The position numbers and the translations under genes were made by a program. A DNA stretch of 64,000 nt from Bugula neritina (Eukaryota > Animalia > Bryozoa). Of the stretch, positions 24,761-59,833 are shown one piece after another. Position 1 is the first letter of the stretch. Every line of letters begins with the position of its first letter. The DNA lies in NCBI GenBank assembly GCA_964035545.1, contig OZ037769.1, positions 2,790,001 to 2,854,000 on the forward strand, written 5' to 3'. The notes beneath the pieces were generated by a model. The model searched no databases, was not told where the DNA came from, and was given only the letters and a program-made list of their open reading frames with translations.

Positions 24761-27700
24761 CTAAGCAGAACCGTTTTCTTTAGCTAGTTTTGCGGCAGCA
24801 ATAGAGTATTTGACGATAGTGGCTGCTGACTCAGCATCGGCAGCAAGCAAGTCTATTCCCTCCGCGACAATAAAGTTGTAAATGTTACCAAACAGTGTTA
24901 CGGTGACGTCGGTGTTAGTGAACTTTCCAGTAAAGAAATCGTAGTTGTAACGATCATAGAGGCACTGAAAAAATAAAGGTAAGTTTATACAAACCAGAGT
25001 ACCCTGGCAACAGCAGTGTTATTATTATTGCAGCTTTCACGAGCTTTAATTAAATATTAACATTTTCAAATTTGAGTTTAATATATTATTTACATTTATT
25101 ATTATTAATTATATTTATATTATTCAGTATATATATTCACCATTAGTTTAATTTTTCTGTTTTCTGCTTTTTGAATTACGTATTTTAATCAGCAATACAC
25201 TTGTAGTAGTTTGACTAACACATGGAAGTATATATACTGATACTGGTATAGCAAGACAAGACTAAGTTATGTACCTTAACAATGGCAAAGCTATTGTCGA
25301 TGGCGTTGTCTTCTATCCAGGCAGCGTCAATCCTTTCCACTTCTAATGCATCATTGGCAACTTTCCATCCGGGGCAAGCTGTATTAATATAAAACATACT
25401 CACCTACAGCAACTGCAACAAACGGCTGCATTTTTATATGTTTTTGTACCCAAGTATACTTAAATGCATTTGTTTGGAGTGTACAGTGATACAATTCGCA
25501 TAAATTATGTCTGATTATGATGAGAGACTGTAACATCTGATAAATTATTCTACTAAAAATGGTTAAATGCAAAGAGAATGTTAAAGTGAGTTTTTAAATT
25601 TGGTTTTCCAATTAGTAGATCCTTGTGATTGTTTTTAGACCAATTATAATAATACAAACTACTTCATAGCTACTAAGCAATATAATAATACAGGGTTTCA
25701 CTCTAACAGAACCTCATTTGTATAAACATAAAGCCCAGTTTTCTGAAAATGTAAATAATATACTCACAAATTTCAGCATCAAAACTGCAGTCGCTACAGA
25801 TATTTGGATTAGCGTAGTAGCCACATTTGTCATTATTCGTTCTCAAGTCATTGCAGCTTGGTGGGCTGGATGGCAGAGGTGATGCTGTAGTGGTTATAGC
25901 ATCAGTCCTTTTAGTCAAGTCTGTTGGAAACCCAAAACATGCTTAACTATGCAGCAAAGCCTGGATATGATATTTTCTAGGTTTTATACAAATTACTTCA
26001 TGTTGAAATCGAGTAAAGAATATAGATTAAAAAGTTTCATTTTACTTAACATTTTTAAACATTATATACATATTTGTAATTTGAAAAAAATGGGAAAAAA
26101 TTTAGAAGCCATATATTCTACTTATTACCATTGAAATATAACTTTTAATTCAGCGGTAACTGAGGTGAAAGTGGAAACAACTCCTAATCTTTCATTTAAT
26201 ATATGTTGGAATTTATTAGTATGTATAAGTAAGAAATTGCAAATTAGTGCTACATGAGATATTGATTAGGTGGTGTAAAAATTTAGTTCATCAAATAATA
26301 TTAGTGCCAAATGTCGACTGAAAGTTTGGTACTGAATTTGGCCTACTTATATTAAAAATAAATTAAGATATAGAACTTACAGTTTAGGGATCTCCTTCTT
26401 TTGCCTACAAACAAAATACACACAATGAGCTATTAAATATATTTAAATAGAGCAATTTGTATTGAGCACAAGATCTTATTCATTCACTTCACATCTAGTG
26501 AATTTGCTGCAATCGTCTTAAAACAAATGATAGTATCAATGCAACTGCATCTATCTTTGTTAACCTGCAGACTTACTAAAAAATCTTTTCTCATATATTT
26601 TCCAAGTAGCAGTCATAAAGAATACGCACAAACAATTGATCCTATTATCATTAATTGTTGACCCTACATAGAGATGATAACTCTTGAAAAATTCTAACTT
26701 ACTAATAATTATATCATTATTTTAAATTTTTGATGATACCTGTGATGAGGTTACCAACAAAGTTGGCAGCGTTTTGCAGAGTATCTATTGCGTCTGAACC
26801 AAAACTAATGATTTGCTTTCCGGCGTTTGTTGCAAAATTAAGTGCAGTATCTAAAATTGCAAACAACACAAACTACAAATAATAAAAAAATAAATTATGT
26901 ATTTATCAACTACCAGGTATACTAGCTGTTGCAAGTAACAATATCATATGAAAACATGTTTTGCTGCATTATGGTTTAGTAAATTATAATGTCAATGCTG
27001 AGTACAAGTACAGCTTCTGTCAATGTGCCAGCATGTCAACCTATACACCAATCTCTCATATTACTGACACATAAGCAGACGACGTTGAAAAAGAATTAAA
27101 AATACTTTGCCATTTAGAGCTTTTTTTAACAGGTGACAAAAACTTTCAGGTAAAACCAGATTCAAATAATAACAAGAACACAATTTTTAAAGCAAAAAAA
27201 TTGTATAATATCAAGCATCGAATTTGATAACTAGAGTTGCTATAATAAACTTATTCGATCAATAAAAATTTGCACATCTGTATTCTAGAAACTGCGTCTT
27301 TGCTTAATCAAAATTTGAAACTTATTTTGAAAAGTGACTCACTGATTGCTGCGGTGAACTCTGCTCCAGCAACTATGGCAACTTTCTGAGCACCATTCAC
27401 ACCACTTCTGATATCTAAACTCAAACAATACACAGTTTAATAGTACTAAAATAAAGCACTATAACCAAGTTATTGATGATACTACACGAGTTATATAGAA
27501 AGAATTATATGTCTGCAACGGAGCATCATAAGTAAGTAATATTAGTTTAAATTACATTCTGATTTCAAGCATATATATTATGATAATGAATAATTATGAT
27601 AGAACTACCCATAATAACTTATGAAGTTGTCAAAGAATGCTAGTTAAATATATTATGATTAGAACTTGTTTATACGTCAGCCTAATGTTGACATTTTAAG

Positions 27701-28887
27701 AGTATGACAACAAAAACTTATAATGTGGCAGTACATCAACACAAGCAATCATGTAATACAAATTATAACGTAGCCATATAGCACTTTGATAGAATTTATT
27801 AAAGTGATACACATATCAAAATACAGTTTATATTAAAATATGCTACATAACTATACTCACTGCTGCCTATGACGTTGATGGCGTTCTGTGCTCCAGAAGT
27901 TGCACTGGAATACTGGTTTGTGACAGCACCTGCGACGCTGTTGCTATGACTCACAAAGAAGTTGGGAACATCCTCAGTGACAAATGACACAAGAGATGGG
28001 CAAGAGTCCTTTCTGCAAATAATTGTACAATCAATTATACTTCCCCCGTGCATTTACAGACCAACTTTTGACATTTTTATACTAAAACTAAAACTAAAAG
28101 ACTATAAGTTAATTAACATTGGCAGGCAAAAAGCAGCAAAAAACATGAGAAAGGGGTTAAGATCAGTATTAAAAGTTTGGGGGGCAGCAAGGGTCTACAG
28201 GGGTGCACAGGGGTTTGAACACTGGCTGAGATGTGAGACAATCTACTTACTTATCTTTACATTTTTGTTTCACGCATGAGGAGCAAGAAGTGTTGGCTAC
28301 TTCCTTGAGATCATCACAGGCGTCATCAATAGGAGCCATGGCATCTAAAGCTGCCTGTAGCTCGGCTGTTTGGGCATCAACAGCGGTTTGTAAAGTTGGA
28401 CCTCCACTGATGGACAAATCTAATAAACATATTCAAAAGCATATTGCATGTATATCACTACTCACTAATCTAGTAATAATCTGCATCAGAAGCTATAACA
28501 CTTAAACATATTATATTAAGGACAAAATGGCATCATTTACAAATGAAATAGCATATAGAAAAATTATACAACTATTCAAGTTTCGTTTATAGAAAGCAAA
28601 AGAATGGTCTAAGAAACTTTTAGAATTAGTTGATCAACAAAAATTGCTTTTTTACCGGAATAAAACAGAGTGTTTCAGAATAAACTGATTATACATAAAC
28701 TATTATGCTTGCATGATGCTTAAAAACAGTTACACCTTGTATACTTTTACTTCACCAAGTTATACATAGTCTCGCACACTTTCTACTCACCAAGTAACAC
28801 ATAGTCTCGAAGCTCAACAATACTGCTTGGTTGTGAGAACACAACCATAGGGAACAGTAGAATACCACAGAAGATCTTGAAAGACAT
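24761..28887 (-). CDS. CLU-like: Secreted clusterin-like protein 1 (~356-361 aa); exons 28887-28791, 28419-28251, 28012-27861, 27414-27343, 26850-26755 (or -26740), 26404-26381, 25920-25768, 25378-25275, 24964-24761
   Basis: Signal peptide; C-x10-C-x2-C-x4-C-x6-C (CDDLKEVANTSCSSCVKQKCKDKKDSC); GKRRR|SL furin site; C-x9-C-x8-C-x2-C-x7-C (CNDLRTNNDKC...CSDCSFDAEISC); C-terminal TDVTVTLFG. The gene model is solid; the family call is by recalled comparison with human clusterin. Confidence 0.75.
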
Positions 28888-28942
28888 CTTGAATCTGGAA
28901 ACAAGTTCTCGTAAAGTGAAGATATTTACAAAACCTCCCCAT

Positions 28943-28949
28943 ATTTATA
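28943..28949 (-). promoter_or_regulatory. Putative TATA box (TATAAAT) of clusterin-like 1
   Basis: Lies about 55-60 nt upstream of the ATG at 28887. Confidence 0.45.
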
Positions 28950-29904
28950 CCAAATCTAACCTACGGTTTTCAGAGCATTCTTGGAAACCAAGTGACATCT
29001 AGCCTTAGTTCTACTTTTGGTAGTGCTTGAAAGTTGGAAATGGAGAGATACACCCCCATTCAAAACAAAGTTTATAAGGAATTAGTGGAGGCAAGCAAAT
29101 ATGAGGGTGACACTATAGACAAAGGGCTAGTTGTAAACTAATATTTGAGTGACCATTCTAGCTAAAAATTGACATCGTACACGTGGCATAATTGTTCAGT
29201 GAGTAGGTTGTCTAAAAATGGTGACCGAAAACATATTTACTGTATTCACTACTACATTCACATATTTACTATATTCACTACATGCTATTATAATGATATT
29301 GCAGTAAAATATTTATGTTACCTTCTATATATCATAATATGTTATTTCAAAATATATATATATTGCCTCTATTCAATTTGTTTAATAAATAATAATAAAT
29401 TAAATAGATGCAATTTAAATGGCATACATGTTATGAGCTGTAAAAATATGATATTTGCTGCAGAATAAATATATGGACACATGGACGCATAGCAATAACT
29501 AATGTAGATAGTATAATTTTTCATTAATATTAATAAGTTTTTGATTTATTTCACTGGAAAAAAATATGATCTTGAAAAAAGCTATTAAATTGTAATCCGT
29601 ACTGTAATAGTAAACTTCAAAATGGTTACAAATGGCTATATAAACTTTCTCTCTCCAAATTGAAAATACTTTAATCTCATCTTTGTGCCCCATAGTGTGG
29701 TGGAAAAACAATAAACACAGTTGTTTAGACTTGAAGATATATCATGCTATATAACAATTATTGCTGTGATATATTTAGAACTAAAAAAGGTTGTATGTAT
29801 AAGGAGACCAAATAATGCAGTGAGTTTATACACTGCTTTTATATCTCAGATAGAATAAACAATGACAAAAAAGGAGCAAATAAGAAAGGTGTTTTGCTTT
29901 AGTA

Positions 29905-30155
29905 TACATAGATATATATGTTTATTGTCGCAGACTGAAAGAAAAGAGCAAAAGAGATATTGTTATAAGCCATAAGTGATAAGTGTTAAGTCATAAGGGA
30001 ATGAATATTAGAAAATGTTGGGTTTATATAACAGTCTAAAAAGTTAGCTAGTTTGTAGTAGCCAGAATCATTGTAGAAAAAGCATAATATAGCTAACATA
30101 GCTATGATAATACAAGTAAAGCTGTGATTATTCAACAAGCTTTCCAACCTCATGT
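29905..30155 (-). mobile_element. Second copy of the dispersed repeat at 9905-10370
   Basis: Reverse-complement similarity; the ORF track also shows similar translations (SFTCIIIAMLAILCFF vs SFSCIITAMPAILCFF). Confidence 0.6.
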
Positions 30156-32253
30156 AATGTCCCAACAAAAGGTATGACACCGAAGCTGTCTATTAAACAT
30201 TAAATAATAGATCTAAGAAACTGCATAATGTAGGTGTGTGAAAAGTTTCAGGTATATGAAAATATAATATTACGCACAAGTATAATAATATAGTAAAAAA
30301 ATAGATTTTTTGAATGCTAGTTCCTCTATGTCTATATATACATAAAATTATATTTTAATAACCCACTGTTTTACATGCTATAAAATAAGAGCTTAGTTCT
30401 AAAAATTATAAAACTGAGTATTTTATTTTTAAAATTCTATTGACGTTTTGTGGCAGTAAAAATAAAATTTGAAACAAATCAACCATGACAATATTACGTG
30501 ACAAGACTAAAATAATGTGTCATATACGTGTAGATGTGTTGACAAGTGTGTCTGCTTTCTAAATATTACTACACATGGGTGTAATACCAGCAGTATTAGA
30601 ATTCTAACAAGTGTCATGTTTCTTTTTGACACCTAGTAGCAGTTGCTTGCAAAAAAAGCATGATGAGAAAGTAGCTGCGTCATTGTCTAACAACTATGCT
30701 GCCTAATAGAATAACTCAAAGAAACTCATTAATGAACATCTTTTCTTGGTATTTTGAGAAGTGGTTGCTCAGTGTAATATAAACTTATTCTATAAGGTCT
30801 TTTATATGTATTAAGATATATATATATTAAATTTGAATGACATTGGTTTTTAGCCTGCGTATACTTGAACGCTTACTTAACTGTTTAAAATACTCTCCTG
30901 TTTGAAAGTATAGAAAGTAAAATAAGTGTTACAGATGCAACGGTAGTCATAAAATTTAATGATTGCTTCAATGCAGTAACAAATTAATACATAAGAGGTT
31001 TGAAAATACATAATGAGCATATAGCAAAGGAAAAAGATAAAGAGTAAACATTAGATGAACGACAGATCTAACACCGAATGGCAAGAAAATGCATGCAAAG
31101 GTAAGAGCAAAAGTTTTTTATGAGAATATGAGAAATATAAAACATTGTCAGGCACTTTATTGTAAGTATGAGGGTAAAAATAATAAAACTTTTGACAATT
31201 TGAAACTCCACATTGAAAATTTTCTTTTTACACTTGCAATGAGCTGCTGGTGACACGTTGTCGAATAGTTGTTGAAACTGCTTACAGAAATAACTTTTTG
31301 TTCATCTAATAACTGTTGTTGTATATTTGGTATATACTTATACACAGTTTATTTTGTGAGGTAACTTTTTTCTTTTTTTCGGTTATTTTTAATACGATCA
31401 AGGCTTTTGCAAAAGTGTATATATATGGTAGCCTACTATAACAGTAGTTGAGTTATTATTTCTTTATTTCTTTAAATAGTGTGCCAAAAATGCTAAAATA
31501 ACTATACTACTATTCATTTATTATGCAATAGCTTAATAGTGTAATAGCCCATAGCTGTAAGTAAAATATGAACGAAAATTAGAATATAATGATTAAATCA
31601 AGTAGTAACAAAATAATTTATTTTAAAGCTAATTTTTGACATAGCAAATACAGCTGAAACTTTTAGAATAAATTTTACATTAGAAAAAGGTAAGAGAATA
31701 TAGCACAAAATCTGAAAAAAACTATTATAGATTAGTGCTAGAATTTTATAGCTAATATACACTGTATCTCAATAGATATATACAAATATTTTTAAAACAT
31801 GAACAACTCTTCTAGAAAGTTTAGGACGTCAATCAGAAAAAAAATAACAATATAAACAGGTTGCAAATTAGGCAACTAATAAATAAAAATAAACTATGCA
31901 TGTATAATTTAGATTATTTTTGCTCTATCAAAATACTATATTTAGGCAGAAACTGTGTCACATAAATATTATATAATGTTTAAAATGGTGGTGTATTGAA
32001 ATATATTTAGAAAATAAAGAAAGAGTTTTACGTATTGCTGGTTGAGATTAATAAACTAAAATTAGTTTCTGCCTGTCACATCTTCCAAGTGTCAGCTGAC
32101 ACGGCAGCTATATTTATCTGCCAGCATATTGAAATATGACAGTTGACATAAGTGGCAGTAGTAAACAAATAAAACTGGATAAACTTGTTGAGATTAAGTC
32201 TGTGCTCATAACATCAGTCATAGGAAGTATAGTCAGTTGATATAACAGAAGGC

Positions 32254-34422
<2,169 letters not shown>

Positions 34423-35519
34423 CACATTCTGAGCTCTTGCAGCTTGTGTAGTGTTTTGAAGTTCACGATAGAAGATCTGTAAAATAATAGCTCTCTAGTT
34501 GCAATATTTAGTTATCAGTATCTAATCGAATTTGCATTATAAAAAAATCGTTGAAAACTTACTACTAATTGCACAAGTAATATGTTTGCTGTTACGCAGC
34601 TTTTACCATAATAATTTTGTTAAATATAACTATACATCACATTAAACTAAACAGTTGAATCTTTATTCTTTTATCTATTTACCACAAAAGGGGGTAGGGG
34701 GTGGTAGTTGCTTCCTATTGCCTCGTTCTTTACAGATTATTGGTTACACGCTCGAAGTCCAAGGCTTGCAGTCTAGCCATTTATAAATATTCTTAGTTTT
34801 AGGGAACATAATTTTAAAATATTTCACAATTTAGATGGTAGAACAGGGAGATAATTTTTAAGCAAAAAAAAATATGCAGTAGTAACCAATTATTTTACAT
34901 CAATTTATTGCAAAAAACTCTATTTAGCTTTATTTATGGTAAATGTCAGCGCAGATGCCTTGATGTAGTAATCTTAGGCAGGCTGTTGCACAGTATACTG
35001 TAGAGTAAGCAATAGATAAAGGAAACTCTCTCGCAATTACTTTAGTATATTTTATTGGCTGCTAAATATTATTAAATAACAGATAAGTAAAACATGTAAT
35101 CTTCAGCAGAATGTTTGCTGTCAATAAAATAGAATAAAATAGATCAAGTAAATTATTAAAAAAAATCACTCCACAACCGAGTTTATTCAACGTAAGGGGA
35201 CTTTCATCAAACACAAACAGTTCCAGCAAAATATCTATGATGAGATTAAACTTTCTACAGAAATTCTCTCTATAACGTTAAGCCGTAAATCTTATTTCTA
35301 CTATACAGCTAAGATTCCAAGTCGAGAAAAATTTCAATTAAAAAAGAGATAATTCTCAAGAACACATTGTCTGTGATATTTCGTATTATTTTATCAGAGT
35401 TAAGACTTTGTACAGGGATGTCATTTGAGTCTCTATACAGGCCGTGAGGTGTAGATGTGACAAGTGATGGGTATGTACAGGTGAGTGGCAGGTGAGCATA
35501 TATGAGTACACAGTATATA

Positions 35520-35693
35520 CAGAATGCAGACATATGAGTTAGCAGAGTGCAGACGTATGAGTTAGCAGAGTGCAGACGTATGAGTTAGTAGAGTGCAGAC
35601 ATATGAGTTAGCAGAGTGCAGACGTATGAGTTAGCAGAGTGCAGACGTATGAGTTAGTAGAGTGCAGACGTATGAGTTAGTAGAGTGTAGACG
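35520..35693. repeat. 23-bp minisatellite (GAGTGCAGACGTATGAGTTAGYA) x~7 in the duplicated UBA2 3' UTR
   Basis: Visible array; the paralogous array at 41125-41254 has fewer units. Confidence 0.9.
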
Positions 35694-35734
35694 TCAAGCA
35701 GTTGGTTTATCAACAGCTACTAGCGGCTGCCATC

Positions 35735-36405
35735 TTAGCTGACTGTCAAATCATCAGCCTTGAGCTTCTTGCTGATCGTCTCATCACCACCATTCGGCGC
35801 CGACCTTTTCCTGTCTCCGGTGGCGGCCATATTTTGTTCAATAACCTCCATTTCATCATCTGAATCTTCTACAAGTTGAACAAAATTGACTCACAGTAAC
35901 TACAACAATCTACAGTAACTACAACAATCTACAGTAACTGGAACAATCTACAGTAACCACAACAATCTACAGTAACTACAACAATCCACATTCTACAGAG
36001 CTGCAACAGTTTACAGCAATTGCAGCAATATATGAGGAACATAACATTGTAATAAACAATTATAATATAGCAATTTAAAATCGTTATGTGTAATGATTAT
36101 GTATAACGAGAATAAAAACTAACTAGAGTAACATAAGAGGGCTAATAATACAGGAAATCCGCCATTTATCACCTGGAATTTGCAATATTAAGTAAAGTCA
36201 TATGCAGGCTGCCACCAGGCTGGTATAACTACAGAATATCCAACAAAATCCATGAGAGCTCAAAGAATAGAAGCTAAATGTGTGTTAATAAACTGCAGTG
36301 CACAACATACCTGTCTTAGCCTCGTTGGGAAGTTTTTCAGGCTGAGCGTTGAGTTGGGTTCTATCAACTATTAGCTTGTACAGTTTACCTTCCTCCAGTG
36401 AGGTG
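35735..36405 (-). pseudogene. UBA2: Duplicated UBA2 terminal exons 13' (36405-36311) and 14' (35868-35735) with intact splice sites and ORF
   Basis: [31 protein letters not shown] and [11 protein letters not shown]...[11 protein letters not shown] match 41872-41778 and 41428-41295. Confidence 0.85.
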
Positions 36406-37331
36406 CTGCAACATCAACACAGAGACGTATAACAACTCAATAACTCAATTGTGAGATTACTTTTTTTCTTTTTTTTTCATTATTTTTAATACGATCAAGA
36501 CTTTTGCAAAAGTGTAATATGGTACTAAAAATAAAGTTATCATTTCTTTATTTCTTTAAATAGTGTGTGAAAAATGCAAAAATAACTACTATTCATTTAT
36601 TATGCAATAGCCTAATAGTGTAATAGCCCATAGCTGTAAGTAAAATAGAAACGAAAATTAGAATATAATGATTGAATCAAGTAGTAACAAAATAATTTAT
36701 TTTAAAGCACATTTTTGGCATGGCAAATACAGCTGAAACTTTTAGAATAAATTTTACATTAGAAAAAGGTAAGAGAATATAGCACAAAATCCTGAAAATA
36801 CTGTTATAGATTAGTGCTAGAATTTTATAGCTAATATACACTGTATCTCAATGGATATATACAAATATTTTTAGAACATGAACAACTCTTCTAAAAAGTT
36901 TAGGACGTCAATCAGAAAAAAATAACAATATAAATAGGTTGCAAATTAGGCAACTAATAAATAAAAATAAACTATGCATGTATAATTTAGATTATTTTTG
37001 CTCTATCACAATACTATATTTAAGCAAAAACTGTGTCACATAAATATTATATAATGTTTAAAATGGTGGTGTATTGAAATATATTTAGAAAATAAAGAAA
37101 GAGTTTTACGTATTGCTGGTTGAGATTAATAAACTAAAATTAGTTTCTGCCTGTCACATCTTCCAAGTGTCAGCTGACACGGCAGCTATATTTATCTGCC
37201 AGCATATTGAAATATGACAGTTGACGTAAGTGGCAGTAGTAAACAAATAAAACTGGATAAACTTGTTGAGATTAAGTCTGTGCTCATAACATCAGTCATA
37301 GGAAGTATAGTCAGTTGATATAACAGAAGGC

Positions 37332-39988
37332 ATGAGATCTGTGCTTGTAAACTCTTGTGTGCTGCTGCTTTTTTGCCAAACATGGCTTATTGATGCATTG
37401 ACAGTCCGACCATTTATTTTGGCTGGTAAGTATTTTCTGTTATTATATTTTTGTGGTTGCAACTTTTCTGGAGAGGTTTTACATTGAAATAATTCTTTTA
37501 ACTTTTGTTACCATTAGAAACTAGAGAACCATTGGCCTGCAGAAATGGTTTCTAAATGAGTAAAGTGGAATATAGCTTGCATATTCCTATATATAATATA
37601 TTTATTGAACAGTTTTTCCATCTTATATTACAACATCTCTACCTGAGGTGGCCTATAATGATGTAAACTTTTTACTACAAACTCTCTGGTGTTCAAAGAT
37701 AATAAAAATTTAAAACTTTGTTTTAATTCAATGACGTAAACCAACTTTAAACTATTCATCCGGTATAAGCAATAGATAGTGCCATGACGAAATAGAATTT
37801 AATTTGGTATTCATTTCAATTTGGACAGATTTGACCAATGGGGTGGCAGCAGTGGTGAGTGAAGAAATCAGAGAGCAGACAACTCTGCTGGAGGCAGCAG
37901 CTGAGAATCAGAGGCTTGTGAATGAACAGTGCGCTGTCTTAGAGCAGCAGTCACGTGACAGCTGCTTGCAGTGCGCCACCGACAAATGTGAAGAAGAGTT
38001 GAGACTTTATAAACTTTATGTTCACGATTAGTATTTTAGTCTTAAAAACTATATAAACATAGTTTCTGGTAAAGTAAATTAACATTAATATGGCCAAACA
38101 AACAATAATTGTTTGGGTTGATGAAAAAGGACAACTCTTCATTATGAAAATTTAATGAACGACAATAATAATTGGTCATTTAATTTTACTGTTGCAAAAA
38201 ATATACTTCATTATTCATGTAGCATAAATCATTTTATAGTGAATGATATACATTAATTACCTTTACTGGTACATATACTGTGAAAGCTGTGTGTTGTTTT
38301 GTATAGGAGATCAAGTTGTACCGCCGCAGCCAACAATGTTGCGAATACTGTTGTAAAATCAGTGAAGAAAAAATTAAGGCGTTGGGGCAGGCGAGAGCTA
38401 AGGCAACTTAAAAAAAAATGTAAGCCCTATTATAGAGCACTGATATATGTATATGATAGCAAATAGGAAATAGTTTATATCAACTATGATTTTTACTAAT
38501 AAATTTATATTTGCTTTTATTTAATTTATATCAATACAAAATTGAAAAATCAAGCTCAATAAGAAAAGATTCTATCTGATTATTGTTTAGATTGCTAAGG
38601 ATAATGGTAAAAACCTAGAACAGATTATTTTGAATGATATACTGTAAATGATATACTATAAATAAAACACTGTGAATAATTTTATATTGTAAATAATATA
38701 CTGTAGATAACATACTGCAGTAAATAATAAACTGTAAATACAGCCAGCCATGCAATAGACTATTCTAACAGCCATTTGTATTAAACTACAAGGAACAATA
38801 ATTTTCAGCAAATGAAAGTCGTGAAAGAAGATTTCTTATAAGTTGTGACGTCTTCAACTCTGGTGGTCCAGTAGATTGTGAAGAATATGCAGATCCTTCC
38901 ATATGCCCTGCTTGTGTGTTTGACAAAGCATCAAGTGAGTACATATAGAGGTCATTGTTGCTGAACTATATATATATATATATATATATATTCATTTCAT
39001 TTATGTCAATACTAAAACAGACACTCATGTACTGCATTTACATGTTGATGTTTAAATGTATATGGTTTTTTACAACAGCCAATGTTTATATATGTAAAAG
39101 TTTACAGCGCCTGCAAACTGGAAATGTTTGGTTTATAGCTTGCATGCAATGAGCAACAAAGAGAGCCAAATAAGTCTGGTGGTTTATAAAGCTCATAAAG
39201 CTTTAAGCTATAATAAAATATTTTAAAAGAGTCTGAATGGATTAACTTGAAAGCACTTGTCATTTTGTGCCATATTCTGCCACTTAGGTTGTCCAGGCTG
39301 GTCAGCTGCTAATGCTGCCACTGAAAGACTTACTGCTGCCACACAATGGATAGAAGCTGCTCAAACAAACGGCAACATTGAAATCACTCAGGTAACAATC
39401 ATTCAGGTGTCAGTAACTCAGGTATCAGTCACTCAGGTATCAGCCACTCAGGTAACAGTCACTCAGGTATCAGTCCCTCAGGTATCAGTCACTCAGGTAA
39501 CGAGTTTGAGGCTACGGTTGTAATTCTTGCGAGAACACAACTTCTTTTGCTAAACTCTAATCTTGAGAACAGGCTTTTCCTGATTTCTCCATTGCTGCAC
39601 CTACCTCAAGATTAAGCCAACTTAAGGGCAAAACTTTGCTAATAATTATATTAAAAAGATTTGTAGTTGCTAGTGGGTTTTGACTGCAGTAAAATACCTT
39701 CCGGTTGCAGTTTTTCCTCAACTATCGAATTAAATTGTAAACCGACAAGGAATTACAACTCCGCATGAAATTGTAATGATTATCACTTTTCATTGGATAT
39801 TGCAGATGCTATATGAGAATAGAGATTATGACCTTGCAACGGGTGGGTTCAGGAACACCGGTGTATTTATAGACATGTTTGGAACTTCCTACACCTTCAC
39901 CATCAGCGAGCCCGTAGATCTCATCAACATTGTTGGGACAGCAAACTTAATCTCTACATACGTTATTAGTGCTGCAAGAAATGCTTAA
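37332..39988 (+). CDS. CLU-like: Secreted clusterin-like protein 3 (~262 aa); exons 37332-37425, 37829-37997, 38307-38419, 38809-38934, 39288-39391, 39806-39988
   Basis: Signal peptide; CAVLEQQSRDSCLQCATDKCEEERSSC; WGRR and RERR processing sites; CDVFNSGGPVDCEEYADPSICPACVFDKASSC; TERLT..W; TGVFIDMFG. Exons of 169 and 104 nt match paralog 1. The exon-2 donor (GTTGAG) is weak. Confidence 0.75.
39383..39502 (+). repeat. 15-bp donor-containing repeat x8, in frame and stop-free
   Basis: CAG|GT every 15 nt from 39392 to 39497. Confidence 0.9.
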
Positions 39989-41294
39989 CACATTCTGAGC
40001 TCTTGCAACTTGTGTAGTGTTTTGGAGTTCATGATAGAAGATCTGTAAAATAATAGCTCTCTAGTTGCAATATTTAGTTATCAGTACCTAATAGAATTTG
40101 CATTATAAAAAAAATCATTGAGAACTTAACACCAACTGCACAAGTTCTAGCAATATAGTTACATACGACAATATGTTCGCTGTTACGCAGCTTTTACCAT
40201 AATAATTTTGTTAAATATAACTATACATCACATTAAATTGAACAGCTGAATCTTTATTCTTTTATCTATTTACCACGAAAGGGGGTAGGGGTGGTAGTTG
40301 CTTCCCATTGCCTCGTTTGTTACAGATTATTGGCTACACGCTGGAAGTCCAAGGCTTGCAGTCTAAGCCACTTACAAATATTTTTAGTTTTAGGGAACAT
40401 AATTTTAAAATATTTCACAATTTAGATGGTAGAACAGGGAGATGGTTTTTAAGCAAAAAAAATATGCAGTAGTAAACAATTATTTTACATCAATTTATTG
40501 CAAAAAACTCTATTTAGCTTTATTTAACCGTAAAGGTCAGCGTAGATGCCCTGATGTAGTAATCCTAGGCAGACTGTTGCATAGTATAATGCAGAGTAAG
40601 CAATAGATAAAGGAAACTCTCTCGCAATTACTTTAGTATATTTTTATTGGCTGCTAAATATTATTAAATAACAGATAAGTAAAACATGTAATCTTCAGCA
40701 GAATGTTTGCTGTCAATAAAATAGAATAAAATAGATTGAGTAGATTGTTAAAAAAAATCACTCCACAACCGAGTTTATTCAACGTAAGGCGACTTTCATC
40801 AAACACAAACAGTTCTAGCAAAATTTCTATAATGAGATTAAACTTTCTACAGAAATTCTCTCTATAACGTTAAGCTGTAAATCTTATTTCTACTATACAG
40901 CTAAGATTCCAAGTCGGGAAAAAATTCAATTAAAAAGGAGATAATTCTCAAGAACACATTGTGATATTATGTATTATTTTATCAGAGTTAAGACTTTGTA
41001 CAGGGATGTCATTTGAGTCTCTATACAGGCCGTGAGGTGCAGATGTGACAGGTGATGGGTATGTACAGGTGAGGGACAGGTGAGCATGTATGAGTACACA
41101 TGTCCTGGGAGCTGCTGAGTATATACAGAGTGCAGACATATTAGCTAGTAGAGTGCAGACGTATGAGCTAGTAGAGTGCAGACGTATGAGTTAGTAGAGT
41201 GCAGACGTATGAGTTAGTAGAGTGCAGACATATTAGCTAGTAGAGTGCAGACGTCAAGCAGTTGGTTTATCAACAGCTACTAGCGGCTGCCATC

Positions 41295-44200
41295 TTAGCT
41301 GACTGTCAAATCATCAGCCTTGAGCTTCTTGCTGACCGTCTCATCACCACCATTCGGCGCCGACCTTTTCCTGTCTCCGGTGGCGGCCATATTTTGTTCA
41401 ATAACCTCCATTTCATCATCTGAATCTTCTACAAGTTGAACAAAATTGACTCACAGTAACTACAACAATCTACAGTAACTGGAACAATCTACATTCTACA
41501 AAGCTGCAACAGTTTATAGCAATTGCAGCAATATATAAAGAACATAACATTGTAGTCAACAATTATTATAATTATAGCAATTTTAAGTTGTTATGTCCTG
41601 CAGAGATAATCTACAACAAGAATAAAAAGCACACAAGCTGGAATTGGCCCATAACAATGAAAGTCCTATTGAAGCTGCCACCAGGCTGGTATAACTACAA
41701 AATAGCCAACTGGTTCCATGAGAGCTCAAAGAATAGAAGGTAAATGTCAAGTCAGCTGACTTTAGCACATAACATACCTGTCTTAGCCTCGTTGGTAAGT
41801 TTTTCAGGCTTAGCGTTGAGTTGGGATCTATCAACTATCAACTTGTACAGTTCACCCTCTTCCAGTGAGGTTCTGCAATACCAACACAGAGACGTGTAAC
41901 AACTCAATAACAAATCCATACACAGACACAACACAAAAACCTGCATACACTGCACAATAGTTAGATTATACCTGCATACACTGCACAATAGTTAGATTAT
42001 ACCTGCATACACCTCACAATAGTTAGATTATACCTGCGTACACCTCACAATAGTTAGATTATACCTGCAAGCACTGCACTGTATCTCCATATGCAAACAT
42101 ATGTATAAAATAACAGGTAAATGAGATACAGAAATTTGTCACATGTCACTCACGTCACGTTGACAATAATGACGAGGTTATACTCTTGTAGAAAATCGTC
42201 ACACTTGAGACGACTTCCCTCCAGAATGTTGAATTCGGAGAGATATTTGGTTTCATTTCCTTCCGTTACTCCCTCCTCATCAGTGAGCAGAATCGTGCCT
42301 TTACCATCATCCAGTTCAATGTCTGGTGACTGCATACCTAACTCTCCCTTCAGCACCTGTAGCAACACATGTACATGTAGTAACAGATGTACATGTAGCA
42401 ACACATGTACATGTAGTAACAGATGTACATGTAGTAACACATGTACATGTAGTAACACATGTACATGTAGTAACAGATGTACATGTAGTAACACATGTAC
42501 ATGTAGTAACACATGTACATGTAGTAACAGATGTACATGTAGTAACACGTGTACATGTAGTAACACATGTAGAGGTATAATCACTGTAGAGGTATTAGTA
42601 CTGTAGCAACACATGTACATGTATCAGTAACATTACAATACACACATGTACCCTGTGAGTATACCTTTTCGCTAAGACTCTGCAGTGTCATTGAGGAAGG
42701 GTCAACTTGTAGGATGACTTCAGGTTTGTCTGAGCAGACGTAGCACTTGGGGTTAGCTTTATCCAAGACACACGGGTTGAGTAACATCTTATGGGGGTTC
42801 GGTTTTCTTACCAGATATGTCTGCAATATACAATATAGTATTCATCATAGTATAGTACTCATAGTATAGTACTCATAGTATAGCACTCATAGTATATTAC
42901 TCATAGTATCGTACTCATAGTATATTACTCATAGTATAGTACTCATAGTATAGTACTCATAGTATAGTACTCACAGTATAGTACTCACAGTATAGTACTC
43001 ATAGTATAGTACTCATAGTATAGTACTCATAGTATATTACTCATAGTATAGTACTCACAGTATAGTACTCATAGTATAGTACTCATAGTATAGCACTCAT
43101 AGTATATTACTCATAGTATCGTACTCATAGTATATTACTCATAGTATAGTACTCATAGTATAGTACTCATAGTATAGTACTCATAGTATATTACTCATAG
43201 TATAGTACTCATAGTATAGTACTCATAGTATAGTACTCACAGTATAGTACTCACAGTATAGTACTCATAGTATAGTACTCATAGTATAGTACTCATAGTA
43301 TAGTACTCATAGTATAGTACTCATAGTATATTACTCATAGTATATTACTCATAGTATCGTACTCATAGTATATTACTCATAGTATAGTACTCATAGTATA
43401 GTACTCACAGTATAGTACTCATAGTATAGTACTCACAGTATAGTACTCATAGTATAGTACTCATAGTACAGTACACTACTTACAGCTTTACACTTTTCTA
43501 TGCCCCCACAAACAATCTTCATACACTCCATGACCTGTACAGCTGCTATGATAGCGTTGGTAGTGGCTATAGCGGGTATAATGTTACCAGCCATGGCTAA
43601 AACAATTATATACTATATATTGTATGCAGTATATGTTAGAGTATCCTACCGCTAGTAGCTCTTACCAATCATATACTATATATTGTATGCAGTACACGTT
43701 AGAGTATCCTATCGCTAGTAGCTCTTACCAATCATATACTATATACTGTATGCAGTACATGTTAGAGTATCCTATCGCTAGTAGCTCTTACCAATTATAT
43801 ACTATATACTGTATGCAGTACATGTTACAGTATCCTATCCTTAGCTCTTACCAAGTATACAAAACCACCTTGAAGTGTAAAAGAAGTATGTGAATTTACA
43901 CCCTGTGTAGTATAACTGCTTCATCAGAACACAACAGGGGTGTTTCAATATAATGTATCTTTTAGGACAACTTGTGTTGAGTGTATAATAAATAGAATCC
44001 AGCTTTAGTACGATTTCAAGGGTGAAGAAACAGTCAAAAACTTGAGAAAAACCTCGTCAAAAAATTCGGATTTTAAAATTCCATTAGACGGATTTTATGA
44101 CTTATTGTAATCATGCGCCAACTTTTCTATATAATCGTAGCGTAGAGTTATATACAGTATTAATAAGAAGTATACACAAAGTATACAAGTGGTTATAAGA

Positions 44201-53053: not shown

Positions 53054-56013
53054 TCATTGAGGGTACCCGGCTGCAAGGAAAACTTTCTTGGGGGACTTTT
53101 TGGCTCTTTTTGAAGAAATGATGTGAATCACAGGATTTTGGGATGAATTTGGATTTTTGCTGTTGACCATATTATTCTTGCCTTTTCCTGAGGTCTTTTT
53201 CTTGTTTTTACGATTATTATTTGGTTTCTTCCTGTTTACAGTTTTTAGGTTGTTTATTGCTACATCCCCTGTCTTGGAGTTCTTTTTGTCTTTGGCATTT
53301 TTCACATCTTTTTTGACCTGCTTAACTTTTTTCTGCTTTTGAACATTTTTCTTTCTGTCCTTAGTAATTTTTTTCTTCTGCTTTTGTGCTTTATTTTTTA
53401 TATTGTTTTCATTTTGCTTCTGCTTCTTTTTGTCATTTCTGATGTTTTTTCTTTCTTGATGTTCTTTTTCTGCCTTTTTAACCTTTTTCTTAGCTTCTTT
53501 TTTCTTCTGCTCTTTCTTTTTCTTCTTTATTTTTTCATGTTTGTGCTTTTGCTGCTCTTTTTGAATAGCGTCTAATATTGATGTTTGATGCTTCTTTCCT
53601 TGATTTTTCACAATGCTTTTAGGTATGTTTTGTTTCTTAGCACTTTTTTCTAGTTTTCTCGTTATCTTTTTAGCTTTTCTGACAGCCTTTTTGTTTTTGC
53701 CATGAACTTGAAGAAGCTCCCTAAGATCACTTTTCAACTTGTTCCTTTTTTTATCAGAGATTTTCCCAGGTTCTTCCAAAATATGCAGCACGTTACCAAG
53801 TGTTTCTCTAAAAGTTGAACTTTCAACTTTGTGTTTCAATCTTTTTTTGGTTTCATTCTCTTTTATTTTGCTATGTTTTGTTTTGTGCTCCAATTTTTTC
53901 AGCTCATGTTTTATTTTATCTTTAATCTCCTCCCCTATTTTCTTTTTATGATGCTTTTTTGCTTTCCGCTTAAGCTTTTTTACTTCATGTTTGATTTTTT
54001 CTTTAGCTTCTTTTCTCCCTTCTCCTTTCTTTGGAAGGTGCTTTGCTTTGTGCTCCAACTTTTTTAGATCATGTTTTATTTTATCTTTAACCTCCTTCCC
54101 TTTTTTCTTTTCATGATGCTTTTTTGCTTTCCGCTTAAGCTTTTTTACTTCATGTTTGATTTTTTCCTTAGCTTCTTTTCTCCCTTCTCCTTTCTTTGGA
54201 AGGTGCTTTGCTTTGTGCTCCAACTTTTTTAGATCATGTTTTATTTTATCTTTAACCTCCTTACCTTTTTTCTTTTCATGATGCTTTTTTGCTTTATGTT
54301 CAAGCTTCTTTATTCTGTGCTTGATTTCATCTTTAGCCTCAGCTCTCTTCTTTCCATCTTTTGGAAGATGTTTTGTTTTTCGCTCCAACTTTTTCAGATC
54401 ATGTTTTATTTTGTCTTTAACCTCTTTCCCTTTTTTATTTTCATGATGCTTTTTTGCTTTACGCTTAAGCTTGTTCACTTCATGTTTAATTTTTTCTTTA
54501 GCTTCTTTTCTTCCTTCTCCTTTTTTTGGAAGGTGCTTTGCTTTGTGCTCCAACTTTTTCAGATCATGTTTTATTTTATTTTTAACCTCTTTCCCTTTTT
54601 TATTTTCATGATGCTTTTTTGCTTTGCGCTTAAGCTTCTTTACTTCATGTTTAATCTTTTCTTTAGCTTCTTTTCTTCCTTCTCCCTTCTTAGGAAGATG
54701 CTTTGTTTTTCGTTCCAATTTTCTGAGTTTATGTTTTATTTCTTGTTGTGCTTCTTTTTTATGTTCAGGCTTTTGATGGTCATGTTTTACTTTATGCCCT
54801 ATCTTCTTCAAATCATGCCACAAGTTCCCATTTTCTTTCCATACATTCTTAACTTCTTCTTTTACCCAATGCCTTTCTTTTTCATGTTTAAGTTTACGGA
54901 ATCTTTTCTTCAGATCATTATATCGGTGTTTGCTCTCTTCCAGACGCTGTTCCAGCAGCATTTTTTTCAATCCTTCTTGCATTGGGTTCTTTTTGTGTTC
55001 CTTCCTGTTATGCTTCTCATCACCTTTAGCTTTTCCTTTAATTTTCTTTTTTATTGACCTCTCAATCTCTTTAGCTTTTGCTTTTTCACGACCTGTGTAA
55101 AAATTAAACAGCAATAAAGTAAGATTTTAATCTATACACTATTGGTTTTTAATTCAAGTTTATAATTATTTCACTTTTAAAAAATCTTAATTTTCCTAAT
55201 GAATGTAGATGAATATCCTAAACAGACTGAGTTTCAAAATCAAAAAGGCAACATTTGAAACATGGCTATAATAGAAGTTCACAGTGATTTGGACATCATA
55301 ACCCATTAAGACTTGTTACAAGTAAACCAGCTTACCATGTTTCTCTTCTTTAGCCTTGTGATGACTAATTGGGGACTTATGCTCAGCTGAATCAAGCTTG
55401 TCCACCACTTGTCTGGTCTTGTGGATAGCATGCTTTATGCCATGCTTAGCGTTTAGTGCATTTAAAAATGGATGTTTAAGTTCTAAAACATAAAACATTT
55501 GTTCGAATATTTGTAACCTTTTATACATAAAACGGCTGTTTTAGATTCACTTTCCAAGTTCTTGCTTGAAAGTTAAAAATCTAAAAGTGCCTACTATCCA
55601 TATACAAGTAAAGGGTCAATTAAAACTTTATCACATTGATATCAGCAACTCTACATTTCTCTTGATTTTCTGTAGCCAGATCCTTTTACTCAATATTTTT
55701 ACTGCTCTAGAATATTGTTTAAAGTTGTTAGATAACTAGCAGCGTTGTGATGGTTATTATATTTACACATTTCCAGCAAATTTGAGCTTATTCTCTATAT
55801 ACTATATCTAACGCTGTATATGCCTACTAATACCATATCTTTTCAAAAAACTAGAGTTGCTTTCTATGGGTTCACCTATAACAGTTATTTTTTACATGCA
55901 GCTAAAAATATAATTGAGTTATGCTCACCTGACAAAAATTTGTTTCCCTTTACTTCGTGATAATTTACAAGACATATTGCTGCCACGTAACCCAGCAGCC
56001 CCCAAACTTTCAT
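53054..56013 (-). CDS. Secreted, extremely Lys/His-rich repetitive protein (~756 aa); exons 56013-55929, 55482-55336, 55092-53054
   Basis: Signal peptide MKVWGLLGYVAAICLVNYHEVKG and phase-1 GT-AG introns. The 2-kb exon has ~5 copies of a 55-aa (165-bp) unit made of two related KIKH(D/E)(L/V)KKL half-units. Confidence 0.8.
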
Positions 56014-57925: not shown

Positions 57926-58034
57926 CTAGTTGTGTTCTTGGGGAGAGGACAGTTGTGTTAGTGTGATGCTAATTGTAGGCCTATATAGCTTGCACTCAGC
58001 TTGCCCAAACCATTTGCATCTGGATGGTAGAGAA

Positions 58035-59402
58035 ATGAAGCCGATAGACTACCGGTGTTTAGTTCTGTTGCTTTCAGTTCTCAGCACTGCAAACGCTTGG
58101 TTCGGCAGAGAGGCTGCCGTTGAACCTGATTATGAATTAGTAGGACAACATAATTTTGGTGAAAACCAGAATTTTGAAGGTAATCCTGCGGCTGAATATG
58201 GCCAGCAAGGTATGTTCAATAATGAGCGGTATGAACAACCTCCTATGAACTATGAAGGTCAAAGACCCAGCAGTTATGGAGGCTCAATGGGAGAAAGGTT
58301 TCAGAACGGTATGCAGGCGATGCGTGGTTTTGCTTCGCAATATGGTGAGAGTCGAATGCCTGGCATGAGCAACATTCTGAACGCAGCCGTGGCGGCTCGT
58401 GATGGTAACAAAGAAGAGTTTCGGAAACAGCTTCTCACAGCTGGTATGAAAAAAGCTGGAAAGATAGCTTCACAGAATGGTGCTGCCTCAGCAGCTCAAC
58501 AGAGAAATGCAAACGAGCAGCAACCAAGCAGTGGTCATAGTGTCTTGCACAGCATACTCGGTGCTACTGCAGCTGCCCATAAAGGCGATAAAGAGGCCTT
58601 TCATAACCATTTATTAAATGTTGGCATACATAAAATAGCATCTAAAGTGGGAGGCAAGCATGGCGAAGTGGTGAAACAAGCTCTTTCCCTGGCCGCCGGC
58701 CACGGTAATGCGAAGGAGTTGAAGAAGCATTTACTGACTGAAGGACTGAAAGGTGTTACGGGGGTTCTTGCCAAACATGGAGGTAAAAAAGGACAGGCTG
58801 TTGCACAGGCTATCACAGGAGCTGCGGCAAGTGGAGGTGGTTTTAAGGCTATTCAAAAGTCTTTAATAAATACAGGCATAAAAGGAGCCACACAAGCAGG
58901 TGTAGATGCTGCCACTGGGCTTGTAACCGAGTTTGCTGGCCCGGCAGCAGGTATGATTGCTAACAAGCTCTTGGGGAAAGCTGGAGGTGCTTTGGACAAA
59001 GTTGTTGGCAAATATGCCGTCAAAGGAGCTGAAAAGCTAGAAAAAGTTGGCGTAAAAGAAGCTAAAAAGCTTGGCAAAGGTGCTGTAAAAGAAGCTAAAA
59101 AGCTTGGCAAAGGTGCTGTGAAAGAAGTTAAAAAAGTTGGCTCAGAAGCTAAAAAGATAGGAAAAGGTGCCGTGAAAGAAGCTAAAAAGATTGGACACAG
59201 CGTAGCTAATGCTGCTAAATCAGTGGGAAATAAAGTCAAACACTTCTTTCATGGCTGGGGTGAGCTACTAAAATCTACAAGAACTTGTAGATTTCTATTT
59301 AATTGTATAAAATAATAATTATTCCCTGCAAAACTATTCTGATAATATATTTTAATATGTTTGTTTGTTTTAGGAAAGAAAAGAAGGAGAAGAAGAAGAT
59401 AA
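58035..59402 (+). CDS. Secreted Gly/Ala/Lys-rich helical protein (~417 aa) with 11-mer repeats, ending HFFHGW-GKKRRRRRR; exons 58035-59259, 59374-59402
   Basis: Signal peptide MKPIDYRCLVLLLSVLSTANA, a long ORF, KLGKGAVKEAK repeats, a TGGG|GTGAGC donor and a TTTTAG|GAAAG acceptor. Confidence 0.82.
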
Positions 59403-59833
59403 AGTTCTCACTATTCCACATCTAGTTGATTTTCCTCGATGAAATGCCATTTGGTTGCAATTTTAACTCTTACTTTCATTTATCCCAGCATTTCAATATC
59501 AAAATGTAACAATATTGTCACAGTTCTTTTTTAATAAAGCTTTTATACTACAAACTACAACGGAATAATTTACTTGAAACAATTTATTTCTATAATAAAA
59601 CATATGCTGAGTATCATGATAATTTCAATTTAAACTTGTGGAGTAGCACAATAGATGGTCCTACATTGGGTTACACAGCTGCATTGAATTCAAGTTAACA
59701 GTTGGCAAGTTGATAATTAGCACCTTCTGCTTTTTGTATGCGGTACCTAAACTTCTAAATGTTAGGCTTAGGTCAACCAGAGCTTAGTTTCAGTTCCTTG
59801 TGACAAAGAAATAATTCTGCGGGACAAGAATCT

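Follow-up and report, generated by a model that had tools for sequence, protein, structure and literature searches.

Clusterin (CLU, or ApoJ) is a chaperone of human blood and brain that is tied to Alzheimer's disease, and CLUL1 has the same scaffold and cysteine pattern. A paper of 2025 on the structure of clusterin speaks of a 'conserved vertebrate secretory glycoprotein' that is 'phylogenetically younger' than the small heat-shock proteins, and describes how cleaved, disordered hydrophobic tails and the amphipathic helix 7 carry the chaperone, receptor and lipid functions of the human protein (PMC12527946). We analyzed a window of 64,000 nucleotides of bryozoan DNA (Bugula neritina, assembly GCA_964035545.1, contig OZ037769.1, positions 2,790,001 to 2,854,000 of the forward strand), where the original prediction had placed three paralogs of a secreted, clusterin-like family, two of them full length. 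Hand-built exon models agree: genes A and C are intact (361 and 262 amino acids), copy B is a truncated tandem copy, and a fourth paralog, D, lies outside the window. From their sequences and predicted folds, these genes very probably encode clusterin homologues, as had been proposed, and none of the three outcomes named beforehand as refuting this was observed. They form a sister family of vertebrate clusterin and CLUL1 and are not members of PF01093, because they fall short of its Pfam cut-off and their stalks, their tails and the number of their predicted glycans differ.

The resemblance to clusterin (PF01093; 7zet, 7zeu) covers a putative signal peptide, the predicted discontinuous coiled-coil/disulfide/alpha-beta layout, two clusters of five Cys, a predicted basic cleavage site between the clusters, a conserved Trp, a V-x-V-x-LF strand, the final helix and, as far as they were checked, probably intron positions. 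In paralog D, the Watersipora protein and the long Lingula protein, the first Cys cluster even has the human spacing, 10-2-4-7. Helices 6 and 7 of clusterin have no confident counterpart in the family, which also differs in having several paralogs per genome.

Evidence for homology with clusterin

The genes of the window were searched exon by exon, full-length searches and fold predictions used their database homologues, and the joined models were translated to check the reading frame and count features. The window is collinear with a B. neritina contig through UBA2, through a gene of 265 amino acids and through the A orthologue, at approximately 74-90% DNA identity in exons and introns alike. 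Judged from this collinearity and identity, the host is a Bugula-like cheilostome bryozoan and no vertebrate. A profile of the C-terminal exons retrieved full-length homologues in Lingula anatina and Branchiostoma, and later searches added Watersipora subatra, B. neritina, further amphioxus genes and unplaced sequences; because the searches were word-limited or the profile shallow, this host list is a lower bound. The named homologues (B. neritina EB796_007907, Watersipora XP_067934185, Lingula XP_013383260 and XP_013383274, Branchiostoma XP_035668320 and CAH1254094) are all annotated as uncharacterized or hypothetical and, where this is shown, have no Pfam domain on record. They have in common the ten Cys, a distance of 19 residues from Cys10 to the Trp, a G-K/R-R site and the shared introns described below, while their linkers vary in length and charge. 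Kin in brachiopods and amphioxus suggest that the fold comes from the common ancestor of protostomes and deuterostomes, in keeping with the earlier proposal of an origin deeper than the vertebrates. A literature search of incomplete coverage found no paper on an invertebrate clusterin.

When family profiles were compared with 177,635 PDB sequences, human clusterin (7zet) ranked first, with expectation (E) values of 0.0038 and 0.0049. Four segments align, all in the same order: helix 1; the first Cys cluster and the aromatic motif that follows it; the second Cys cluster; and the region of the Trp, strand and final helix. All ten Cys fall in register with human C102-C129 and C285-C313, and the Trp, V-V-LF and the final helix of the C-terminal domain are further collinear landmarks. 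CLUL1 sequences were not among the matches of any search. The likeness drawn earlier between TERLT and the AERLT of clusterin has to be given up as a coincidence: the motif is not kept in A or D, and lies 10 residues past the last Cys versus 21 in clusterin.

Template-free AlphaFold models were obtained for the short Lingula protein (predicted local distance difference test, pLDDT, 83) and for the Bugula A orthologue (70, with a core near 90 and a linker below 50). Both run in the same order, from a strand and a long helix through short helices and a return helix to a three-strand domain and final helix, and both have the discontinuous coiled-coil/disulfide/alpha-beta domain layout. For the Lingula model, the only Foldseek matches below E 0.001 were three clusterin chains (probability 1.00), and VIA gave clusterin Z scores of 8.9-9.3 versus 4.7-4.9 for the next fold. 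Its comparison with the Clusterin cluster of the Atlas gave a template-modelling (TM) score of 0.55 over 187 residues with a root-mean-square deviation (rmsd) of 3.9. Clusterin chains were also the top three Foldseek matches of the Bugula model (E 0.003). In the fold comparison that had been proposed with the original prediction, made on these two homologues, clusterin was aligned end to end (residues 25-445), at 14-19% identity, and ranked first for both models, with a clear margin in the Lingula model only. Separately, the Lingula model also had a match in the ESM Atlas to an 883-amino-acid cluster of chordate S1 peptidases (TM 0.50, 157 residues, rmsd 3.0).

The short stalk that had been predicted can be put in numbers. 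From the Gly of helix 1 to Cys1 there are 29 residues versus 64 in clusterin, and from Cys10 to the Trp 19 versus 55, so that the two antiparallel stalk helices are 35 and 36 residues shorter than those of clusterin. Both helices being shorter by the same five heptads is what a shortened stalk on an unchanged fold would call for. The three-helix coiled coil of clusterin (helices 2, 6 and 10; approximately 85 Å) is not matched, the long helices being shorter and the linker helices having a pLDDT below 50.

Gene structure may supply a further line of evidence. Three introns are common to Bugula, Lingula and amphioxus: one in phase 1 five codons before the Gly of helix 1, one in phase 1 within the codon preceding Cys10, and one in phase 0 that interrupts the opening strand of the C-terminal domain, the last being absent from paralog D. 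If the introns of human CLU lie at c.97, c.934 and c.1164, all three would match. The shared phase-0 intron aligns to human T388/V389 in one profile alignment and is two residues off in the other. The human limits found in papers are brackets and not exact positions: residues 388-393 for the exon 7/8 boundary and 293-317 for the exon 6/7 boundary (PMC3296573; residues from variant tables, with a 52-residue isoform offset subtracted). One intron position, at the aligned exon 7/8 boundary, therefore agrees with the published limits, as far as the alignment of the sequences places it.

Several results weigh against homology or against a close likeness to clusterin. The sequence signal is weak on its own, because neither half-profile was significant against the PDB (E 7.2 and no match). 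The expected match to the Pfam Clusterin profile appeared in part: Clusterin was the top Pfam match of both Lingula proteins (21.4 bits, E 1.4e-4, and 18.8 bits, E 8.9e-4), the better of which was the best score of any homologue and lies below the gathering cut-off of 23.6 bits, and the profile matched neither any exon of the window, searched singly, nor the Bugula orthologues. PDB searches with single exons and feature searches of the ESM Atlas also gave no matches. The Foldseek E value of the Bugula model is modest and its VIA Z score of 7.3 is tied with plain coiled coils. The global rmsd to clusterin is 15-25 Å, which the shorter stalk would explain, in whole or in part. N-glycan sequons number 0-4 versus six in clusterin. 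Finally, the linkers would be periodic helices rich in Gly, Ala and Val (pLDDT below 50), with an aromatic content of mostly 4-11%, and do not match the disordered tails rich in Phe, His and Arg of the human protein.

Gene models of A and C

Gene A has nine exons on the minus strand, from 28887 to 24761, and gene C six exons on the plus strand, 37332-39988; all introns are GT-AG and neither model has an internal stop. The outer coordinates of the original prediction, 24761 and 39988, mark the stop codons of the two intact genes, A and C, and its Cys spacings were reproduced in our models (10-2-4-6 then 9-8-2-7 in A, 10-2-4-6 then 10-8-2-7 in C). The N-terminus is hydrophobic in every full-length member of the family by inspection.

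In gene A, exon 1 (28791-28887) encodes the putative signal peptide and first strand and ends at the phase-1 intron five codons ahead of the conserved Gly of helix 1. Exon 2 (28251-28419) holds the short stalk helix with Cys1-4, and exon 3 (27861-28012) Cys5, the motif FVTEDVPNFF, which the profile-PDB alignment places against the clusterin segment following Cys129, and the beginning of the amphipathic linker. The linker continues through exons 4 (27343-27414) and 5 (26740-26850), the latter ending in the codon for the Gly of the G-K-R signal, and exon 6, of only 24 nucleotides (26381-26404), brings the predicted cleavage site GKRRR/SL. Exon 7 (25768-25920) carries Cys6-9 up to the phase-1 intron within the codon preceding Cys10. 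Exon 8 (25275-25378) follows with Cys10, the return stalk helix and the conserved Trp 19 residues on, ending at the phase-0 intron that interrupts the opening strand of the C-terminal domain, and exon 9 (24761-24964) encodes the alpha/beta domain with its TDVTVTLFG hairpin, the final helix and the stop.

Gene C has the putative signal peptide in exon 1 (37332-37425), the stalk helix and Cys1-4 in exon 2 (37829-37997), and Cys5 in exon 3 (38307-38419) together with a cationic amphipathic tail of 22 residues (net charge +6) that ends in W-G-R-R. Exon 4 (38809-38934) has a predicted RERR furin site and Cys6-9, exon 5 (39288-39391) Cys10, the return helix and the Trp, and exon 6 (39806-39988) the alpha/beta domain and stop. 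The furin motif predicted for both proteins is canonical in C; A, with G-K-R-R-R-S-L and Lys at P4, has a dibasic convertase site and not a strict furin site. Similarly, the TxVxVxLFG signature given for the last domain fits A, but C reads TGVFIDMFG.

Both models find support outside the window. The eight introns of the published B. neritina protein EB796_007907 correspond to those of model A. An intronless contig from run SRR4020085 covers the six C exons over their full length at 83-93% DNA identity and so documents splicing in a relative, and gene C is under purifying selection in comparison with it (ratio of non-synonymous to synonymous substitution rates, dN/dS, 0.25). No RNA run was found to cover the window; the one run that does match it has no splice joints and may be the window's own source.

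Copy B, paralog D and neighboring features

Copy B (32254-34422, plus strand) lies in a 5.5-kb tandem repeat (31354-36444 and 36449-41911) that also duplicates the last exons of UBA2; exons 3-4 are missing from it, as is the final part of exon 2. It retains the exon of the putative signal peptide (32254-32347), an exon 2 shortened after Cys1 at a GT derived from (TA)n (32781-32906), the exon of Cys10 and the return helix (33752-33855) and the last exon (34240-34422). At the deletion junction, where B lost approximately 1 kb, there is a palindromic element resembling a miniature inverted-repeat transposable element, with (TA)n (32931-33124, strand undefined; arms of 97 nucleotides, 97% complementary), of which at least 40 copies are dispersed genome-wide. 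B and C differ by 4-5% in non-coding DNA and at 5.7% of non-synonymous sites, and from its sequence B looks relaxed, or may be an uncollapsed haplotype in place of a true duplication. On the published B. neritina contig that carries a C-type gene there is one such gene only. Splicing from the new GT at 32907 would keep the reading frame of copy B and yield 168 amino acids with Cys1 and Cys10 only, eight residues apart. These two are disulfide partners in clusterin, and the product would be a stalk and end domain without the disulfide domain or tail. This form is probably not under selection, because dN is close to the divergence of the introns.

Paralog D (365 amino acids) was found on contig C4 at approximately 6274750-6276910, where it lies on the same strand as, and between two exons of, a gene that by eye looks like a matrix metalloproteinase. 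No members beyond A-D turned up when the whole genome was scanned with the family profile. The PF01093 profile gave one chance match in the genome (E 5.9), rejected for want of the cysteine pattern. Four exon-profile matches of 2,000-2,800 amino acids were also rejected: the two that were scanned are bacterial immunoglobulin-like repeat proteins, and the other two were judged alike by length and repeat count.

Lingula has one long and one short family gene placed head to head, like the window, and amphioxus has three in a row that include a head-to-head pair. In the family tree, which is long-branched and unrooted, Bugula A groups with C (support 94/93, not starred). Short forms may therefore have evolved independently in Bugula and Lingula, and their common head-to-head layout is not demonstrably ancestral.

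Two further features of the window lie outside the family. An unrelated secreted open reading frame (ORF; 57930-59411) has Lys-rich amphipathic repeats at its end, and splicing of a phase-1 intron that follows FFHGW connects it to G-K-K-R-R-R-R-R-R-stop; in its tail, its G-basic ending and the kind of place at which the phase-1 intron falls it is like the linker of the clusterin-like genes. On the minus strand, 53054-55114 is a repetitive Lys/His-rich ORF of 686 amino acids with extreme strand skew.

Predicted linker processing and possible function

In each of the 11 proteins compared, Cys5 is followed by an amphipathic helix, with a periodicity peak at 94-101 degrees and a moment approximately twice that of shuffled sequences. 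It is 22-136 residues long, rich in Gly, Ala and Val, and ranges in net charge from -28 to +6; the periodicity is near 98 degrees, and an 11/22-residue autocorrelation is present in D, Watersipora, Lingula and amphioxus. In this periodicity the linkers resemble exchangeable apolipoproteins and other proteins of 11-mer amphipathic repeats, a comparison of how they may work, without a sequence match; unlike in apolipoproteins, the repeats are set inside a disulfide scaffold. As sequence motifs, G-K/R-R, the usual signal for dibasic cleavage and amidation, ends the linker in 11 of 11 proteins, and R-x-x-R occurs in six. The genome encodes copper monooxygenases related by family to the amidating enzyme, which was not itself identified among them.

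The explanation that we find best, and moderately probable as a whole, is a sister family of clusterin and CLUL1, inherited from the protostome-deuterostome ancestor, in which a two-chain scaffold bears a tail that would bind lipid or hydrophobic surfaces. The protein would be secreted, given its hydrophobic N-terminus. In the predicted fold, the N-terminal strand and helix pack against the C-terminal alpha/beta domain, and a short two-helix stalk leads to the two clusters of five Cys, which, from their register and the fold match, probably form the five-rung antiparallel disulfide ladder of clusterin. A convertase may then cut the linker at G-K/R-R. Of the two disulfide-linked chains that would result, the first may be left amidated through the Gly and would carry 22-136 residues of amphipathic helix as a tethered tail. 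This tail is likely to be the working part, as are the tails and helix 7 of clusterin, and the protein would serve in body fluid or secretions, either as a carrier resembling apolipoproteins or as a holdase. Homology does not by itself imply a chaperone or apolipoprotein function, since the tails that bear the human functions differ in make-up here.

Other roles for the same scaffold appear less probable. An unlikely alternative is that the clusterin homologue serves in defense, presenting or setting free a membrane-active, amidated peptide, and is no lipid carrier or chaperone. The short, cationic and strongly amphipathic tail of gene C with its W-G-R-R end would suit this role and brings amidated fish antimicrobial peptides to mind, as would the F-G-K-R ends and cationic last turns of D and Watersipora and the Lys-rich repeats and W-G-K-K-R end of the nearby secreted gene. 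However, the tails are neutral to strongly acidic (to -28) in amphioxus, the long Lingula protein, gene A and an unplaced homologue, and the tail of gene A should stay tethered, since no dibasic site separates it from Cys5. We also doubt that the proteins are structural components of mucus, cuticle, shell matrix or an adhesive that self-assemble through their amphipathic repeats after cleavage. Bryozoans, the brachiopod and amphioxus are ciliary suspension feeders, and a fixed scaffold with linkers widely variable in length and charge, in genes that expand in tandem, would fit such a role, but the host list may just mirror search sensitivity. That a helical hairpin closed by Cys clusters arose by convergence or is a prediction artefact is highly improbable: the marginal sequence scores (PDB E 0.004, below the Pfam cut-off), the non-significant halves and the middling Z scores that coiled coils give are set against collinearity in four segments, the register of all ten Cys, stalk helices that are both shortened to a matching extent, an intron where the human exon 7/8 boundary aligns, and clusterin ranking first in every whole-protein sequence-profile and PDB structure search.

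With clusterin homology preferred, homologues in lophotrochozoans and amphioxus would place the origin of clusterin at the protostome-deuterostome ancestor or earlier. The family provides natural deletion variants of clusterin, in which the ends and the disulfide core are kept, the stalk is short and the tail is different. It permits direct tests of whether lipid binding or chaperoning came first, and of the purpose of the long stalk and of the conserved surface of the disulfide domain. More tentatively, and on balance short of probable, the clusterin scaffold may be an ancient bilaterian display platform, whose ancestor was short-stalked with a convertase-released, amidated amphipathic tail, and to which vertebrates added five heptads while swapping the chemistry of the tail for chaperone and receptor functions. 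If so, the invertebrate proteins would show the original role of clusterin, probably the binding of lipids or membranes.

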